A stretch of 64,000 nt of DNA. Source: Amphiscolops sp. MND2022. Its lineage: Eukaryota. Shown here in pieces: positions 12,054-61,008 of the stretch. The stretch is from positions 66,898,001-66,962,000 of the forward strand of contig OZ076413.1 of the NCBI GenBank assembly GCA_964187785.1. The letters run 5' to 3'. The stretch's first letter is position 1. Each line of letters begins with the position of its first letter. The notes under the pieces were generated by a model. That model searched no databases. It had not been told where the DNA came from and saw only the letters and a list, made by a program, of their open reading frames with translations. The position numbers and the translations under genes are program-made.

Positions 12054-12234
12054 TCAGGCGGCGGAAGCAGAATTGATGAGATCGGAGGCTATTTTGAGCA
12101 GTTCTTGATCGTCGCCGGTTGTGTCGTCGTCATCTGACTTGAATTTGCGACTGGTTTCGACCACAGTCGATGATTCAGTCTCCTCGCCATCTCTGATCAC
12201 CGTTCGTTTGATAACCTCTTTCTTCAGTACAACT
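12054..12234 (-). CDS. Host gene exon 6 (terminal coding exon): RVVLKKEVIKRTVIRDGEETESSTVVETSRKFKSDDDDTTGDDQELLKIASDLINSASAA*
   Basis: Acceptor TGTGTTGTTTGGTTGCAG. Phase 2, matching the donor at 21951. 181 nt = 1 + 60 codons including TGA. GC-rich relative to the flanks. Confidence 0.75.
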
Positions 12235-13899: not shown

Positions 13900-16160
13900 A
13901 AAACTAACTTTTGCGAAAGAATCGAGAATCTATCATAATCTATCCAAAGATTCAATTCTATTACAATACAAGCTGAACCTAGAACATTCGTTAGGATAAA
14001 CTGATTGAGAAAATATTGCTCTGGAAAAGGGCTTTCAAAAATTTGTCGAAACTTTTCTCAACACGAGCAAACAATTTGCGCCAATGAGTTATTCGTGAAC
14101 GCGAAAACAACTGGATCAAAAACAAAACTAAACGCGAACTTAATAGACGTGATCACTTGTTTGAAAGTTGGTTGAGAAATCCATCTAATCGAGCCGAATC
14201 ATTGAAATAAAAGACACAAAAAGGAATAGGGTCAAAAATTTGATAAAGCAGAAAATATATAAAAGCAGAGGAAGAGAGAATATGTACGAAGATCCTTTGA
14301 TAATTGTCGCGATTTGAAATCATTTCATCGCCAATTGAATTCGATAACTGGAAAGTAACGATGCTGTGTATCCAAGTTTTACGGGAACAACTAATATCGA
14401 TATGTTCAATGATTTTTACGTTAACGTTGGTCCCAATATGCACGAAGTTATCCCGACAGAAAACCCGATCAATTTGAAAAGTGAAGTTCAATCAATGTTT
14501 CTAGAACCGACTAATGAAACCGAATTGGCAACAGTGATGAACAAACTGAAAAATAAAACATCCACAGGGCCCTATGGTATATCGAATAAATTACTCGAAC
14601 TAGCAGTACCGGCAATAGTAGCGCCTCTTAATACTCTCATCAATAGATGTTTCAGTGAATCCTATTTTCCAGACATTCTCAAGCTAGCTAAAGTGATTCC
14701 AGTATATAAAAACGATGACCCCCATGAAATCTCAAATTATAGACCTATCTCTGTGGTGTCCCCTATTGGAAAGATTGTACTTTACAAAAGAATAATTAAC
14801 TACATCAACAAGTTTGATCTACTTCATCCGAACCAATTTGGATTCCGTAAAAAGCATAAAACAGTAGACGCACTTGCGTGTGTAATAGAACAATTACCGC
14901 TGTGTATTGATGCTAAAAAACCGGCTTGTTGTATTTTCCTTGATCTCTCTAAAGCATTCGATAGCATCCACCATGACATATTGCTGTCCAAATTATTAAA
15001 TTATGGTTTTCGAGGGCCAGTACATAACCTTCTAAAATCATTATTGACAAACAGAAGCCAAATCGTTCAAATCGGCTCCTGTAGATGGGAACTGAAACAA
15101 TTAGTATGCGGTGTGCCACAGGAGTGTGTTGTAGGTCCATTAAAGTTCATTTTATATGTCAACGATTTACCTGACTTTGTACAATCAAATAACACAATGT
15201 TTGCTGATGATACTAATCTTTATCAAGTATTGCCCTCCTTCAATCTGATGCGTTTCAAAGAGATGCGCAAAATTGAACACTGGATGAATGGTAACACTCA
15301 AGTGCAACGTTGACAAATCTAAAGCACTAGTCTTTGCTAGTAAGGTATCAACCGATCCTAGCTTTGGAGAGCTGAACATCAAAATCTTTAACGAGCCGGA
15401 AGTATCTGGGAATCATATTGGGCAATAATCTTTCGTTCAGTGAACACGTGGCAAAAATCAAAAGTAAAGTACTTTTTTCCAACTACGTTGTATGGAGGTC
15501 ACGTGAGTTAACTAGATCGCAGATGATTTTATTTTACAAGTTACATATCAACCCCTCAATTCAATATGGAGTACTAATTTATAGATGCCCGTCTTATTCA
15601 AAGCTGAGTCCTATTCTCACGATACAGAAGCGAATAATAAGAACAATGTTCTTTTTGCCGAAATAAGCGAGTGTCAGTGAAAATATGCTTCGAAATGAAC
15701 TTCCCACTGTTTATGAGCTACATGTTTATGAATTATTGAAATTGACTTTGAATTGTCTTAGAGGCGAACTCTCATCGGCCATCGAAAGATCTTTTGCGTC
15801 TTCAGAGTGCCAACTATAGTCTACGATCAGTTAAAAGACAAGATGCCACAGTTCCATTTGGAAATATGAAGTTAGAACAATCTCTGTCCAAGAGAATTCC
15901 CTTGTTTTATTATAGAGTCAATGCTGATGCTGTCCCATCATTGGATATAATCAAGGATATGAGCGAGGTTCATGTGAGTAATTTCAAACATGAGTTTTGT
16001 AGAACCTTCATTTTGGGCCACAGCGACTTCGTTCAATCAATATTTGGACTCTCAAAAGTTAAATAATAGCTGAATGATATGATAACGTGCTAATAACGCT
16101 CAGAATCTCTCTGTAGTAGTCACTGCAGCCTGAACCGGGCTTAACCAACCCCGCACCTGC
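13900..16160 (+). pseudogene. 5'- and 3'-truncated LINE ORF2 fragment (tether, RT, start of 3' UTR), same family as the 32-36.6 kb LINE
   Basis: Near-colinear with 33930-36200 (YPSFT.TTNID.FN.FYVNVGPNMHEVIP, MFADDTNLYQ). Contains frameshifts. Confidence 0.9.
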
Positions 16161-17467
16161 TGACACGGAAGAACACCAAGTACGAATGTTGCAAGTTTTG
16201 ACAAAAAAGGCCTTTCGACCATGTTGTTTTTGAAAAATTCGTAGGATGATGAGTCATTGTCAATATTCAAGAATTTATCAGGCTCAATACTGAATTCATT
16301 CATTGTGAGAGTTACATTATCGGCTACTTCCATGTTAAACGCCATTTCCAAGTCTGTTACTTCAGCTTCCTTGGTTTTTTCAACAGATACCATTTGGTGC
16401 CTATTTGCAAGTTGTTTCAAAAATAGCTCGGCTCTTTTTGCTTCATCTTAGCTTAGAACGTGCCAGTTTGGAGGGATTAAACAGGCCAGCTGCAAGCATC
16501 ACGTCAGAGAAAGATTTGACTCTTCTATCGTATTCCATTAAACTCAAAAGCATCACACAATTTCTTGCGACTTGATGAACAACATTGTCAGTTACAGGCT
16601 GTGAACTTTCGAATACTTTCCATACTTTCCACATGGACCTGAGTCTGGAAAGAACCGCATACATATCGTCAATTGCGTTTGGATCAAGTTCCGAATAGGC
16701 CGATTACGTTGCTTCTCGTGCACGTTTTACATCAGGCTTGCTTTTCGCTAAATATTCGATTTGATTGTAATGACAATACGAGCGCGTGTCACAGCGCGGG
16801 TCCCTTGAACACTTTGCAAAAACAGTTGGAATAATTTAGACCGTCTTGTAGCTTCAATAATAACGAGATTGAGTCGGTGGGCTCCGCAACCAACAAACTG
16901 GGGGCCCAAATCAATTTGTGAGTTTTCTTGGCGATGCGGTCCAACGTAAAAGCAATCCTCTTCTGTCTCCTCTCCGTCATCCAGTATATCTGGCCATATT
17001 GATCTTCTAAAGTTCAGACAAGCTGCTATCATCGCAATGCAGTTATCCGACTGGTAAGCGAGACACATTCGTGGATCGAGTTTAACAGACTTCAGGCATT
17101 CTTCCAGCTCTACGGTCGTAACAATTGCTCGGATAGATTCTACGCTTTTGAATTCAATCACTTGAGCTACTTGATTGAATTTTCATCGATAAAAGAAACC
17201 AAAATGATTAAATATGTATTTCGACTTGCATCCGTCCAATGATCAAGTTGAACTCCGTAATGAGTCGCCTTTTTCACTCGATCGAGGATCCTCTGTTTCA
17301 GTAATTTGGGTGGTTCCGTTAATATGGCGCATTGCACCGGTCGTGAAATTCACATCCATTACACGGAGTAAATCTTTGCAGCATAATTTACAGCGATAAT
17401 CTTTATTAGGCACTCTTAGAAACCCAGACATTAATTTAATTCTCTTGGGAGAACGCGGAGGCGACAT
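16160..17467 (-). pseudogene. hAT transposase relic, copy 1 (C-terminally truncated)
   Basis: BED finger YRCKLCC..TTGAMRH; AYQSDNC (catalytic-D region); CGAHRLNL (CxxH motif); start of the dimerization domain RPFLSKLATFVLGVLP. Confidence 0.8.
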
Positions 17468-17469
17468 GG

Positions 17470-19880
17470 CAAATCGTTCAAATTGGCTCCTGTAGATGGG
17501 AACTGAAACAATTAGTATGCGGTGTGCCACAGGAGTGTGTTGTAGGTCCATTAAAGTTCATTTTATATGTCAACGATTTACCTGACTTTGTACAATCAAA
17601 TAACACAATGTTTGCTGATGATACTAATCTTTATCAAGAATTGCCCTCCTTCAATCTGATGCGTTTCAAAGAGATGCGCAAAATTGAACACTGGATGAAT
17701 GGTAACACTCAAGTGCAACGTTGACAAATCTAAAGCACTAGTCTTTGCTAGTAAGGTATCAACCGATCCTAGCTTTGGAGAGCTGAGCATCAAAATCTCT
17801 AACGAGCCGGAAGTATCTGGGAATCATATTGGGCAATAATCTTTCGTTCAGTGAACACGTGGCAAAAATCAAAAGTAAAGTACTTTTTTCCAACTACGTT
17901 GTATGGAGGTCAGGTGAGTTAACTAGATAGCAGATGATTTTATTTTACAAGTTACATATCAACCCCTCAATTCAATATGGAGTACTAATTTATAGATGCC
18001 CGCCTTATTCAAAGCTGAGTCCTATTCTCACGATACAGAAGCGAATAATAAGAACAATGTTCTTTTTGCCGAAATAAGCGAGTGTCAGTGAAAATATGCT
18101 TCGAAATGAACTTCCCACTGTTTATGAGCTACATGTTTATGAATTATTGAAATTGACTTTGAATTGTCTTAGAGGCGAACTCTCATCGGCCATCGAAAGA
18201 TCTTTTGCGTTTTCAGAGTGCCAACTATAGTCTACGATCAGTAAAAAGACAAGATGCCACAGTTCCATTTGGAAATATGAAGTTAGAACAATCTCTGTCC
18301 AAGAGAATTCCCTCATTTTATTATAGACTCAATGCTGATGCTGTCCCATCATTGGATATAATCAAGGATATGAGCGAGGTTCATGTGAGTAATTTCAAAC
18401 ATGAGTTTTGTAGAACCTTCATTTTGGGCCACAGCGACTTCGTTCAATCAATATTTGGACTCTCAAAAGTTAAATAATAGCTGAATGATATGATAACGTG
18501 CTAATAACGCTCAGAATCTCCCTGTAGTAGTCACTGCAGCCTGAACCGGGCTTAACCAACCCCGCACCTGCTGACACGGAAGAACACCAAGTACGAATGT
18601 TGCAAGTTTTGACAAAAAAGGCCTTTCGACCATGTTGTTTTTGAAAAATTCGTAGGATGATGAGTCATTGTCAATATTCAAGAATTTATCAGGCTCAATA
18701 TTGAATTCATTCATTGTGAGAGTTACATTATCGGCTACTTCCATGTCAAACGCCATTTCCAAGTCTGTCACTTCAGCTTCCTTGGTTTTTTCAACAGATA
18801 CCATTTGGTGCCTATTTGCAAGTTGTTTCAAAAATAGCTCGGCTCTTTTTGCTTCATCTTAGCTTAGAACGTGCCAGTTTGGAGGGATTAAACAGGCCAG
18901 CTGCAAGCATCACGTCAGAGAAAGATTTGACTCTTCTATCGCATTCCATTAAACTCAAAAGCATCACACAATTTCTTGCGACTTGATGAACAACATTGTC
19001 ATTTACAGGCTGTGAACTTTCGAATACTTTCCATACTTTCCACATGGACCTGAGTCTGGAAAGAACCGCATACTTATCGTCAATTGCGTTTGGATCAAGT
19101 TCCGAATAGGCCGATTACGTTGCTTCTCGTGCACGTTGTACATCAGGCTTGCTTTTCGCTAAATATTCGATTTGATTGTAATGACAATACGAGCGCGTGT
19201 CACAGCGCGGGTCCCTTGAACACTTTGCAAAAACAGTTGGAATAATTTAGACCGTCTTGTAGCTTCAATAATAACGAGATTGAGTCGGTGGGCTCCGCAA
19301 CCAACAAACTGGGGGCCCAAATCAATTTGTGAGTTTTCTTGGCGATGCGGTCCAACGTAAAAGCAATCCTCTTCTGTCTCCTCTCCGTCATCCAGTATAT
19401 CTGGCCATATTGATCTTCTAAAGTTCAGACAAGCTGCTATCATCGCAATGCAGTTATCCGACTGGTAAGCGAGACACATTCGTGGATCGAGTTTAACGGA
19501 CTTCAGGCATTCTTCCAGCTCTACGGTCGTAACAATTGCTCGGATAGATTCTACGCTTTTGAATTCAATCACTTGAGCTACTTGATTGAATTTTCATCGA
19601 TAAAAGAAACCAAAATGATTAAATATGTATTTCGACTTGCATCCGTCCAATGATCAAGTTGAACTCCGTAATGAGTCGCCTTTTTCACTCGATCGAGGAT
19701 CCTCTGTTTCAGTAATTTGGGTGGTTCCGTTAATATGGCGCATTGCACCGGTCGTGAAATTCACATCCATTACACGGAGTAAATCTTTGCAGCATAATTT
19801 ACAGCGATAATCTTTATTAGGCACTCTTAGAAACCCAGACATTAATTTAATTCTCTTGGGAGAACGCGGAGGCGACATGG
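17470..19880. repeat. Second unit of a 2411-bp tandem duplication (first unit 15059-17469), containing LINE 3' part and hAT transposase copy 2 (ATG 19878)
   Basis: ORF pairs offset by exactly 2411 bp (16100/18511, 16748/19159, 17214/19625). Junction microhomology CAAAT at 15059, 17470 and 19881. Confidence 0.95.
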
Positions 19881-21950: not shown

Positions 21951-22106
21951 CTTCTGGTGGCTGTTTTGACGAGGTGCTCCGTGTCCACTTCTTGGCTGAA
22001 GGGAGAGTCTGCGATGGCCTGTTCGATCAGCTTGCCCGTGTCCTCGGTCTCAGCCCCGTCGTACACAAACTCCTTCCGGTTGCCATCGGGATCCACTCTG
22101 ATGATC
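21951..22106 (-). CDS. Host gene exon 5: (R)IIRVDPDGNRKEFVYDGAETEDTGKLIEQAIADSPFSQEVDTEHLVKTATR
   Basis: Acceptor GTTGTGTTGGTAG, donor AAG|GTGATT. 156 nt, phase 2-2, open frame, GC-rich. Confidence 0.75.
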
Positions 22107-37142: not shown

Positions 37143-37355
37143 CTGGTGACTCGTTTGGTAGTCGTGTTGGATTCTTCTTCGGAGTCTTCTTCGCTGCTTC
37201 CCTCTTCACTTGACGACCCTTCCTCTTCCTTGCCAGCTTCTGGCTGTGGTTTCTCAGGCACTTTCTGGATGTCCGGACTAGTGGGCGTATCCCCACTGGG
37301 TCTCTTCACCGGCTCCACGAATGTTGTCTTCAGAAGAGTTGTCTTAGAAGGCTTC
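37143..37355 (-). CDS. Host gene exon 4: (E)KPSKTTLLKTTFVEPVKRPSGDTPTSPDIQKVPEKPQPEAGKEEEGSSSEEGSSEEDSEEESNTTTKRVT
   Basis: Acceptor GGTGTTTTAG, donor CAG|GTAATA. 213 nt, phase 2-2, open frame. Confidence 0.75.
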
Positions 37356-38398: not shown

Positions 38399-39511
38399 GT
38401 AATCCTTAAATATCCAGGTCCAAACCGCCTGACACTTAAATATCCAGGTCCAAGGCTTTGTTTGACTTTCACTTTTCTCACACCTAAAGCGTGAATTACA
38501 AACTCAGCACGTCGCATTACATTTTTCGCATATGGAACTTTATCCTACGGACTTCCTGGTCTACTGTGCCTCAAACGAGTGTAGTATGCGTTTTTTGCAA
38601 GTAAAGGGGATTTTACAGGACCAACCCCCCTATCCAACGTACGAGGCCCCTATGGCATTGGTTAAAGATGCGAGTACGCAACTTGATGGATTTCGGTGGA
38701 GGTGCCGTATACATCGAAATGACAAAAGTTCTGTTAGGGATGATAGTTGGTTAGCAGATAGTCGGTTAACGTTCCAACAGTTTATTATAACTGCTTATTT
38801 TTGGTCAGTGGGTATTCAGAATCATCAAATTATTTCCATGCTGAATCTCTCTGAATCAACTGTGGTTCAATATTTCCAATATTTTCGTGATGTCTGCTCT
38901 CACTGGTTACTGGAAAATCCCATCCAACTGGGTAGAGTTGCTTATACTGTTCAAATTGACGAAAGTTTGCTCTCCAAGCGTAAAAACAACCGAGGACATA
39001 TTTTACCACAACAGTGGATTTTTGGGATTTATGACGTTGAAAAAAAGTTGGATATTTACGAAAGGTACAAGATCGGTCGGCAGCTACCCTATTGCCGATA
39101 ATCCAAGAAATCGTTCTCCCAGGGACCGTGATTCACTCCGACGAATGGGCTGCGTATAACGGAATAGCGACTCTTCCAGTGGTTCCCCCTTATATTCATC
39201 AAACTGTAAATTATTCCGTTTTTCGTCGGGCGTACACACTAATGACATCGAGGTGTTTTGGAAAAAAGGGAAAATGAAGCAGAAGTTTATGTCAGGGACC
39301 ACACCTGGCATGCTGAGTGGATATTTGGACAATTTTATGTGGAGGCAGTACCATGGTAAAAAGTCGAATGAGACTTTCTTGAAGTTGCTTAAGCATATAA
39401 GCGAGTGGTATCGAAAGTGAAAATTTTATTTTTGACACTTTGAAACTGTTTTCTACAAGAAAAATTAGTGGACCTGGGTCAAATTTTTGAAACTGGATAT
39501 TTAAGGATTAC
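38399..39511 (+). mobile_element. Merlin (IS1016/ISXO2-like) DNA transposon, copy 1, frameshifted transposase from 38532
   Basis: TIRs GTAATCCTTAAATATCCAG / CTGGATATTTAAGGATTAC; TSD GTTTTGGG / GTTTTGGA; motifs [39 protein letters not shown]. Confidence 0.88.
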
Positions 39512-40243: not shown

Positions 40244-41356
40244 GTAATCCTTAAATATCCAGGTCCAAACCGCCTGACACTTAAATATCCAGGTCCAAGG
40301 CTTTGTTTGACTTTCACTTTTCTCACACCTAAAGCGTGAATTACAAACTCAGCACGTCGCATTACATTTTTCGCATATGGAACTTTATCCTACGGACTTC
40401 CTGGTCTACTGTGCCTCAAACGAGTGTAGTATGCGTTTTTTGCAAGTAAAGGGGATTTTACAGGACCAACCCCCCTGTCCAACGTACGAGGCCCCTATGG
40501 CATTGGTTAAAGATGCGAGTACGCAACTTGATGGATTTCGGTGGAGGTGCCGTATACATCGAAATGACAAAAGTTCTGTTAGGGATGATAGATGGTTAGC
40601 AGATAGTCGGTTAACGTTCCAACAGTTTATTATAACTGCTTATTTTTGGTCAGTGGGTATTCAGAATCATCAAATTATTTCCATGCTGAATCTCTCTGAA
40701 TCAACTGTGGTTCAATATTTCCAATATTTTCGTGATGTCTGCTCTCACTGGTTACTGGAAAATCCCATCCAACTGGGTAGAGTTGCTTATACTGTTCAAA
40801 TTGACGAAAGTTTGCTCTCCAAGCGTAAAAACAACCGAGGACATATTTTACCACAACAGTGGATTTTTGGGATTTATGACGTTGAAAAAAAGTTGGATAT
40901 TTACGAGAGGTACAAGATCGGTCGGCAGCTACCCTATTGCCGATAATCCAAGAAATCGTTCTCCCAGGGACCGTGATTCACTCCGACGAATGGGCTGCGT
41001 ATAACGGAATAGCGACTCTTCCAGTGGTTCCCCCTTATATTCATCAAACTGTAAATTATTCCGTTTTTCGTCGGGCGTACACACTAATGACATCGAGGTG
41101 TTTTGGAAAAAATGGAAAATGAAGCAGAAGTTTATGTCAGGGACCACACCTGGCATGCTGAGTGGATATTTGGACAATTTTATGTGGAGGCAGTACCATG
41201 GTAAAAAGTCGAATGAGACTTTCTTGAAGTTGCTTAAGCATATAAGCGAGTGGTATCGAAAGTGAAAATTTTATTTTTGACACTTTGAAACTGTTTTCTA
41301 CAAGAACAATTAGTGGACCTGGGTCAAATTTTTGAAACTGGATACTTAAGGATTAC
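40244..41356 (+). mobile_element. Merlin copy 3 (tandem-duplication product)
   Basis: Offset 1845 bp from copy 1 with only a few substitutions; same flanks. Confidence 0.88.
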
Positions 41357-42663: not shown

Positions 42664-42949
42664 TCTACGAAATCCTCTGAAGTGACAGGTTTGGTGATGG
42701 GACTTCTAGGAGTGGAAGCATCGGGAGCAAAATATTTTTCCACCGTGGGTGATATTCTCCTGTCCAGGGGAAGAGTACTCTTCGAGGTATCGGCGGGAGA
42801 GAAGGCACGTGACATGGGCGAAAGAGGAGACACGGGGTCACAGAAAGAAGTCTCGCTGTGAGTCGGCTTGTCTTGGTCTGAAGTCGGACAGTCCACAGGA
42901 GATTTCGGGTCCTCCAAGTTTTCCATCTCTTTCACAAAGGGTTCGAAAT
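42664..42949 (-). CDS. Host gene exon 3: (D)FEPFVKEMENLEDPKSP...PITKPVTSEDFV, Ser/Pro/Thr-rich
   Basis: Acceptor TTTTCAATACCTACAG, donor GA|GTTAGT. 286 nt, phase 1-2, open frame. Confidence 0.7.
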
Positions 42950-43481: not shown

Positions 43482-43827
43482 CTTTTGACTCTTTGCTGTT
43501 GCCAGCAGCATTCTCAGACCACAACTTCATGAGCTCGTCGTAAGCAGAGAAGACATTTCCAGGCACCTCTTTGCGTTCCTTCAACACAGTGCCTGGATAC
43601 ATGTTGACAAACTTCTCCATGCCCAGTCTGGTGGCAGCATCTTGCCACTGAGGGGTGATGCACTTCATGACGATATAGGACCAAGGGTCCTCTACAGTTT
43701 TCTTGGGCTCTGCTGCTTCATCCAATGGCAAGTCTGTGGGTTTCTTCACTGCTGGATTGTCAATGTACTCGAAGCTGCCTCCTCGGAGACAATCGATACT
43801 GCCACTGACACTAGCCCCGGCTTCAGT
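43482..43827 (-). CDS. Host gene exon 2, encoding a probable death domain; 3' splice donor uncertain
   Basis: Acceptor TTTTTCATTGTTCAG (phase 0). Death-domain-like pattern ITPQWQDAATRLG...YDELMKLWSEN. The phase-1 donor AAG|GTTCCT is weak. Confidence 0.65.
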
Positions 43828-59428: not shown

Positions 59429-59600
59429 CAGTTGAATCGCCCTAATTCGTATCGCTACGGACCGAATGAAATTAGCACGAATAATGAGAAATACGAAGTA
59501 AGCGAATGATTTAACTTTGGTCCGAAATAGGGGTCTGAGATACATGCGAACTGAACGAAGATCCGAGTTATCCGGATACGAATTAACCGGAGTAAAACTA
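59429..59600. mobile_element. Tc1/mariner-type MITE, about 170 bp
   Basis: TA|CAGTTGAATCGCCCTAATTCGTATC ... GATACGAATTAACCGGAGTAAAACTA|TA. Confidence 0.7.
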
Positions 59601-59966
59601 TATTCAGAAAAAATGAACGATTACGGTCCAGTCTGAAATGCAAGTTTTTCGATGACACGGCAATTCGGGAATCTGCTAACAATATTGAGGAGCTTAATTG
59701 GTCGCTTGAATATGTTTGGGGTCAAGAGACTCTACACAGAAGCCGTTACAGAAGGTATATAAAATTTAACATTGGAAGACAGATTGATAGCCATACTTCG
59801 CCTAAATAAACCGAAGAAACAGTTGCATTAACTCCATGTGTTTTTCCATCTATCTTAACCGACACACTCCTTCTGTACTATGGGCAAATTCAAGCTAATC
59901 AGCAAAACTAATTTGTGGTTTCATTACGCACGGTCCTGTTTTTAATTTCATGTAATTTCAACTCAC

Positions 59967-60182
59967 CTGAACTTTGCGATGATAATACTCGTGGCAGCAG
60001 CAGCCGCAACAACAGCCCTTGTGACAACAGCAACATCTGCAACACTTGGGCACATTGCACAAACAGCAAACGCAACATCTCCACAAAAAGGCCAACCTGC
60101 GTCTGACACTGGCAGTTGAACTGTTAATACTGCTACTCACACTCGGGAGACGTGCTCGTTTTCTTATTTCCTCCACTTCCAT
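59967..60182 (-). CDS. Host gene exon 1 (putative first coding exon) encoding a cysteine string: MEVEEIRKRARLPSVSSSINSSTASVRRRLAFLWRCCVCCLCNVPKCCRCCCCHKGCCCGCCCHEYYHRKVQ
   Basis: Consensus donor CAG|GTGAGT, phase 0, matching exon 2. An in-frame TAA lies upstream of the ATG. 216 nt. Confidence 0.65.
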
Positions 60183-60841
60183 TCTTATAGCAGCCGTATT
60201 TCTGCTTAATGGCGGCGGCTCATATGTAGTAGCAACTTCAGAGTTTTATCCGGCAGACAGAATATGATAGAGATAGATTGTTCAAAGATGTTTATAGGAT
60301 TCATGGCTGCCAGCTGTTTACATGTACAGCGACTGAAACATACACGCGAAAGTAATTGACCAAATATACAAACAGACGAATAACCGTTTACGGAAATATA
60401 TATGCGAACGAATGAACACTCAAGTATCGGTAACTCAGCGAAGTTCACAGCTTTCATTTCCGAACACATCAAAACAACCAATATTGCAGTGGAGACTAAA
60501 CTGAACCACGGGAAACCAAGAAACCCATTAACAATAAATGTGCTAAATAATCGAGCGAACTATATAAACAATTTCAAAAATGCAACATGTGATCAGAGTT
60601 CAAAAATGCAGGTAGCGACTATATTTTCCAACCAGAACTGACAAAAACTCTAGTGGTGATTGCTACGTGCTATTTTTCATCTAAACCACCAAAAGGGTTA
60701 AAAACTAAGATACCGATTCGAAAATGGATTTCCAGTCTCAATTATCCGAAGATGTACATCGATAAACTTTGAGGTCCAACAGTCAATGAGATCGATTATA
60801 GACCTTTCGTCAATACACAACTCCATACACAATTGAAAGTA

Positions 60842-61008
60842 CATTGAACTCGGTTATTCGTATCCGGATAATTGGGTCTTCGTTTAATTCGTATGTATCT
60901 GAGGCCATTTCGTGGTGACCAAAGTAATACCACCGAATAATTCATATTTCTTCTAGTTCGTACTATTTTATTCGATCCCTAGCGATACGAATTAGGCGGA
61001 TTCAACTG
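60842..61008. mobile_element. Same MITE family as 59429-59600, opposite orientation
   Basis: TA|CATTGAACTCGGTTATTCGTATCCGGATAA ... TAGCGATACGAATTAGGCGGATTCAACTG. Confidence 0.7.

Follow-up and report, generated by a model that had tools for sequence, protein, structure and literature searches.

CSP-alpha (DNAJC5) carries a string of 14 Cys in 24 residues that is heavily palmitoylated, with the hydrophobicity of the string making first contact with membrane-bound DHHC enzymes and palmitoylation then fixing the protein (PMC3481330). In another system, the ANK1 isoform sAnk1.5, the ankyrin-derived C-terminal part works with a short N-terminal membrane anchor alone, a unique transmembrane segment, and has no ankyrin repeats, spectrin-binding domain or death domain (PMC3386213). 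Canonical ankyrin-B is itself reported to be S-palmitoylated (PMC10098127).

Here we analyze a cysteine-string exon in a 64,000-nt stretch of the Amphiscolops sp. MND2022 genome (contig OZ076413.1, positions 66,898,001 to 66,962,000; hereafter the window, whose own numbering is used below). From order, strand and phase we infer its junction with exon 2, and hence that coding sequence of a six-exon gene begins with 59967-60182 as exon 1. The six GT-AG exons run from 60182 to 12054 on the minus strand and, when joined, give an intact 1398-nt open reading frame. In the predicted product of 465 aa (51.6 kDa, pI 5.0), the basic cysteine string is followed by a region with weak likeness to a death domain and then by an acidic tail. 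The least certain element of this model is the donor of exon 3.

60272-60395, minus strand: upstream noncoding block, ~66% identical to species 2, including TTCCGTAAACGGTT and TGTATGTTTCAG
59967-60182, minus strand: coding exon 1, with ATG, variable acidic start, Ser-rich patch, RRRLAFLWR, 17-Cys string and HEYYHRKVQ; donor CAG/gtgagt at 59966-59961
43482-43827, minus strand: coding exon 2, phase-0 acceptor and phase-1 donor; helical, weakly death-domain-like
42664-42949, minus strand: coding exon 3, disordered, Ser/Pro-rich; donor AGA/gttagt at 42664 tentative
37143-37355, minus strand: coding exon 4, acidic, Ser/Glu-rich, ending in TKRVTR; donor CAG/gtaata
21951-22106, minus strand: coding exon 5, IIRVDPDGNRKEF...KLIEQAIADSPF motif, homologous to the canonical ankyrin tail
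12054-12234, minus strand: coding exon 6, second ankyrin-tail motif (VVLKKEVIKRTVIRDGE...VVETS); stop TGA at 12056-12054

The likeness to CSP lies in Cys density (14 in 24 residues there (PMC3481330) versus 17 in 28 here), in hydrophobic residues beside and inside the string, and in a cytosolic protein without transmembrane segment or signal peptide, which for the window gene is a prediction. CSP-type strings pack some 12-14 Cys or more into roughly 25 residues; the window exon has 17 in 28, and its orthologs have 13 and 16. The two proteins differ in that no DnaJ domain was found here in exons 1-4, the extent of the Pfam scan, and in that the string is N-terminal here (starting at residue 36) and central in CSP; there is no detectable sequence homology between them. 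With sAnk1.5 the window gene shares an ankyrin-derived C-terminal part that lies, without repeats or a spectrin-binding domain, behind a short and unique N-terminal anchor (PMC3386213). However, sAnk1.5 is an isoform of ANK1, has a transmembrane helix as its anchor and lacks a death domain, whereas the window gene is a separate locus, has a cysteine string in place of the helix and has kept a death-domain-like region. Their resemblance is probably convergent. The canonical ankyrin gene of the same genome (C1:26.18-26.20 Mb) has both tail motifs in the same order and a common phase-2 intron after TRR, but the window locus lacks ANK repeats, ZU5 and UPA, and what stands at the death-domain position is below the Pfam Death threshold. 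CYSTM proteins and metallothioneins are likewise short and extremely Cys-rich. The sequence-only reading of this DNA had drawn the comparison with CYSTM (PF12734), which does not hold, since CYSTM is a C-terminal tail-anchor module and the string here is N-terminal and has no Pfam match. Metallothioneins differ in their C-x-C and C-x-x-C patterns and in having no aromatic or hydrophobic flanks, and the string exon has no Pfam match to them.

The cysteine-string exon and its conservation

The exon opens with an ATG at 60182 (context ataagaATGG) and runs on the minus strand through 72 open codons to its last base at 59967, followed by gtgagt, which gives a phase-0 CAG/GTGAGT donor. N-terminal to the string lie a Ser-rich patch and then RRRLAFLWR. 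The string itself, C36-C63, holds 17 Cys in 28 residues (61%), encoded by 9 TGC and 8 TGT codons, and His54, His64 and His68 fall within or after it. Both the count of 17 Cys after a basic stretch and the consensus donor bear out what the sequence-only reading had noticed. These first 72 aa have a pI of 8.9 and carry 17 of the 21 Cys of the whole predicted protein. Neither a signal peptide nor a transmembrane segment is evident in the exon from its sequence, and by inspection the hydrophobic run in the 72 aa is broken by Arg and Lys, so that it does not qualify as an N-terminal transmembrane helix.

The same reading had held that the string is not a simple microsatellite. Consistent with this, Tandem Repeats Finder reported no tandem array at the exon at a score of at least 30. 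The DNA is nonetheless TGY-rich, and several alternative frames are also open across the Cys tract. When the surrounding 224 kb were translated in all six frames, no second Cys-dense window came up, with at most 7 Cys in other stop-free windows of 28 aa. Rather than the high-copy repeat that the sequence-only reading had allowed for, the exon is single-copy in its own 1.07 Gb genome by both DNA and protein search, the latter detecting no second exon resembling it elsewhere. Three heterozygous variants lie within it in the sequenced individual (59979, 60006 and 60155), two of which are synonymous, in a His codon and a Cys codon, while the other, Ala10Ser, falls in the variable start.

Orthologous exons were found in two further species by tblastn, on ENA contigs, where the relatives are open reading frames. 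The species 2 contig was found through the ENA-contig relative of the exon 2 frame (43.4-43.8 kb), and its string exon (L026:14001-14243, minus strand; E 1e-34) lies 11 kb upstream of the orthologous exon 2. The more distant species 3 was reached via the conserved tail, and its string exon (L043:13933-14181, minus strand; E 9e-40) lies about 24 kb upstream of its exon 2. Both are on the strand of the gene. A 7-Cys open reading frame (L030:17746-17838) had been considered as the species 3 ortholog and was rejected, as it has a stop and no donor; the true ortholog lies 6 kb further upstream. The string exon is single-copy and syntenic in the three species.

At the amino-acid level, exon 1 is 72-76% identical to the two orthologs, and conservation starts at the ATG in each species. 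In all three, the ATG is flanked by A at -3 and by G at +4, and the phase-0 CAG/gt donor is kept. The string contains 13 Cys in species 2, where 4 have been lost, and 16 in 28 residues in species 3; 13 Cys are invariant in the three-way alignment, together with W34, H64 and H68. Conservation at the cysteines, whose absence the sequence-only reading would have taken as a refutation, is present. Indels between species in the exon are multiples of 3. At the nucleotide level the exon shares 80% identity with species 2, whereas the alignment breaks down a few bases beyond the conserved GT and the intron immediately after it is unalignable.

The Cys frame stands apart in its substitutions: pN/pS is 0.19-0.26 in the Cys frame versus 0.95-1.38 in the other two frames of the same alignment, with pS of 0.70-0.96 (near saturation) and pN of 0.13-0.25 in the Cys frame. 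Codon positions 1, 2 and 3 have 15, 7 and 26 substitutions, and 5 of the 13 Cys common to species 2 are encoded by the alternate codon. Judged by these comparisons, the string exon is truly coding, and purifying selection acts on its Cys frame. From species 1 to species 3, identity is 76% in the string exon and 44% in exon 2, and across the two most distant species pairs it is 65-76% in the string exon versus 37-44% in the adjacent domain. That the string exon is conserved far better than its neighbor argues for the putative anchor as the part on which the function of the gene centers.

Upstream, the noncoding block at 60272-60395 holds short ATGs that are not conserved, and is a candidate promoter, 5'UTR, promoter-proximal sequence or upstream acceptor. 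A dispersed repeat of ~110 bp (59841-59948), of which many chromosomes together carry at least 40 copies, starts 19 nt after the string exon donor. High-copy repeats flank the exon at ~59.43-59.67 kb and 60.84-61.07 kb, with a k-mer depth of tens of thousands at ~59.55-59.67 and 60.96-61.07 kb. A 44-nt inverted repeat (59429-59472 and 60965-61008, 89% complementary) brackets the unique island with the string exon and is probably two opposed copies of a high-copy element. A transposon-borne origin of the exon was considered and ruled out, the repeats being confined to the flanks.

We searched for the string exon among known proteins. No database protein containing it was found, either in a word-indexed search or with phmmer against 1.84 billion representatives. 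The latter gave four weak multi-stretch matches (E 9e-5 to 6e-4), and the two that were examined are RanBP2-type zinc-finger repeat proteins. A Pfam scan that covered exons 1 and 2 and the frames of exons 3 and 4 found no family; for exon 1, no match reached E 0.1. A feature search of the ESM Atlas with the string exon returned no usable match, and JGI metagenomes scanned with the three-species alignment returned none. We came across no described family in which one protein has both a cysteine string and an ankyrin tail.

The gene model and its relation to canonical ankyrin

Conserved blocks are collinear between the window and its relatives at 60.0, 43.5-43.8, 42.7-42.95, 37.1-37.4, 22.0-22.1 and 12.2 kb, with no further conserved block detected, whether in the interval that separates the string exon from exon 2 or farther upstream than the string exon. 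Exon 2 has no start codon of its own, and since it opens at an acceptor whose position and phase 0 are kept in three species, it needs an upstream exon. The phase-0 donor of exon 1 fits this acceptor.

The introns of the gene are swollen by transposons. Introns 3/4 (42664/37355, 5.3 kb) and 4/5 (37143/22106, 15 kb), both transposon-rich, are exclusive to the window species; species 2, species 3 and the canonical ankyrin paralog have the corresponding coding sequence in a single uninterrupted exon (compare L025:10528-11139, P0009). This looks like lineage-specific intron gain. Intron 4/5 sits at a CAG/G proto-splice site, and its ends are unique sequence and not transposon ends. For the species-specific intron, an introner-type origin was ruled out on account of these unique ends. 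Intron 3/4 contains near-identical tandem copies of a 189-aa open reading frame (38532-39101 and 40377-40946), a region that matches a species 2 stretch overlapping an IS1595-type DDE transposase gene call. Elsewhere in the window, a block of ~2.4 kb is tandemly duplicated (15794-17551 and 18205-19572), with three open reading frames of 90, 106 and 137 aa that are near identical.

The death domain that the sequence-only reading ascribed to the product is weakly supported. On the positive side, hhalign against the death domain of the C1 ankyrin places ITPQWQ..LGM on IGKDWQ..LGL, at the equivalent helix (E 0.003, probability 10%). However, Pfam Death scores only 12.9 bits on species 2 exon 2 against a cut-off of 22.6 (E 0.12). 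An AF2 model of exon 2 alone, from a 3-sequence alignment and with the domain truncated, has four helices at a pLDDT of 64; its Foldseek PDB and VIA-wide searches gave generic helical matches (Z <4) and no match to a death-domain fold. PDB sequence searches with exon 2 and with its profile returned nothing meaningful. The exon 2 region is therefore best described as diverged and weakly death-domain-like.

The tail is paralogous to that of the canonical ankyrin gene. Exon 5 (IIRVDPDGNRKEF...KLIEQAIADSPF) has a single other match in the genome, at C1:26202360, within the canonical ankyrin gene (G000:C1:26179354-26203994; L033-L041, L032). That gene gave 10 ANK matches in the motif scan; it has its ANK motifs at 26.179-26.186 Mb, ZU5 at 26.188 Mb and a Pfam Death domain (E 4.6e-6). 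Its tail matches exon 5 by BLASTP at 2e-12 and exon 6 by tblastn at 1.3e-4, with the two motifs in equal order in both genes. Moreover, the intron after ...TRR interrupts an identical Arg codon in phase 2 in both, and this coincidence of position points to common descent at the DNA level. No cysteine-string exon was found in the C1 gene. The K/R-rich motifs with which vertebrate ankyrin tails bind obscurin may be similar.

A motif scan over 224 kb, which took in the window with 60 kb on its downstream and 100 kb on its upstream side, revealed no ANK repeats near the locus but only two chance matches with stop codons, one 24 kb upstream on the opposite strand and one 39 kb downstream. No ZU5 (PF00791) lies near C5:66.9 Mb; of 8 matches genome-wide, the nearest on the chromosome is 52 Mb off. 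Because of this lack of ANK motifs within the scan and this distance to ZU5, the window gene is, on sequence grounds, a stand-alone paralog of the ankyrin 3' end and not an ankyrin isoform.

The proposed lipid anchor and its alternatives

Our preferred reading, which we hold with moderate confidence, is that exon 1 of the six-exon gene provides an acylated N-terminal string that tethers an ankyrin-like tail at the membrane without ankyrin repeats. By analogy with CSP-alpha, the one cysteine string studied in depth, the 17-Cys module is probably a multiply fatty-acylated membrane anchor. The gene is read as a membrane-tethered ankyrin tail from three lines of comparison, namely the CSP-alpha-like layout, the palmitoylation of ankyrin-B and the anchored tail of sAnk1.5. 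In this mechanism, RRR and LAFLW would form a basic and hydrophobic patch with weak membrane affinity, and the Val, Leu and Phe inside the string could add to the initial membrane contact. Membrane-bound zDHHC acyltransferases would then attach many palmitates to the string, which would fix the protein to the cytoplasmic membrane face. The death-domain-like region and the acidic tail with its two ankyrin tail motifs would be displayed at the membrane without repeats or ZU5-UPA, and the tethered protein may imitate the ankyrin tail or compete with it. That the gene is transcribed, that exon 1 is joined to exon 2, that the string is S-acylated, that the protein sits at a membrane and that its tail has a partner are all things that we infer. 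The evolutionary evidence for the string exon, as read from the alignments, is solid, and its biochemical role is putative.

Chief among the alternatives is metal binding, at which H64 and H68 hint: all three species keep them, and acylation does not need them. The exon would then encode a metal-thiolate (Zn, Cu, Cd) or redox-buffering, metallothionein-like module, as a stretch that is 61% Cys with His54, His64 and His68 in or after it, and with no evident signal peptide or transmembrane segment, might suggest. Yet runs of 3-4 consecutive Cys with a hydrophobic flank are typical of acylated strings and not of the C-x-C clusters of metallothioneins, and the string has just such runs of 3-4 adjacent Cys beside LAFLW. 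In addition, its Cys count drifts from 13 to 17 across species, which a fixed metal cluster would resist, and it has no Pfam metallothionein match. On balance, we consider a metal-binding module unlikely, though worth keeping in mind. A separate question is whether the exon, while coding, is part of a different transcript, for example that of a small gene of its own or one with some other exon downstream, instead of being spliced to the ankyrin-tail gene. The junction relies on order, strand and phase, and exon 2 is distant by 11-24 kb of transposon-filled DNA. Nevertheless, order and strand are constant in three species despite unalignable intervening DNA, the phase-0 acceptor of exon 2 requires an upstream exon for which there is no alternative conserved block, and the join to exon 1 yields the intact 465-aa open reading frame. 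This arrangement is thus improbable in our estimation.

The two remaining explanations find little room in the data. One, raised as a possibility by the sequence-only reading, is that the exon serves a full-length ankyrin gene as an alternative first exon and puts a lipid anchor where the ankyrin repeats would be. It has in its favor the ankyrin-like tail and the small membrane-anchored isoform without repeats that vertebrate ANK1 makes (PMC3386213), but it fails on the absence of an ANK motif in the 224 kb scanned, on the 52 Mb to the nearest ZU5, and on the presence of the true ANK, ZU5, Death and tail gene on another chromosome, without a Cys-string exon. We therefore regard it as very unlikely; since what we see is a paralog of the ankyrin 3' end at a locus of its own, the anchor would replace ankyrin repeats in an evolutionary sense only. 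Finally, the TGY-rich DNA and the several frames open over the Cys tract could suggest a decaying (TGY)n trinucleotide tract that is noncoding and open by chance. Here, however, the low pN/pS is limited to the Cys frame, the differences among codon positions (15/7/26) are those given above, and identity to species 2 falls from 80% in the exon to unalignable intron past the GT. Selection in the Cys frame and the three-species comparison lead us to exclude a decaying microsatellite or chance open reading frame, to which we give hardly any probability.

Returning to the preferred reading of a lipid-anchored ankyrin tail, its origin allows a more tentative proposal, possible but on present evidence doubtful. 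The gene might be a 'small ankyrin' peculiar to one invertebrate lineage. On this view, a partial copy of the ankyrin 3' end would have gained a new first exon, perhaps out of a TGY trinucleotide tract, and this exon would tether the regulatory tail of ankyrin to membranes by mass S-acylation, in convergence with vertebrate sAnk1, where a transmembrane helix produces the same topology. If the N-terminus is acylated, the gene would represent a second, independent route by which an ankyrin tail that has no ankyrin repeats is tethered to the membrane. It would also present a cysteine string as dense as that of CSP-alpha on an unrelated protein, and would offer a simple handle on the stand-alone role of the poorly understood ankyrin C-terminal tail.
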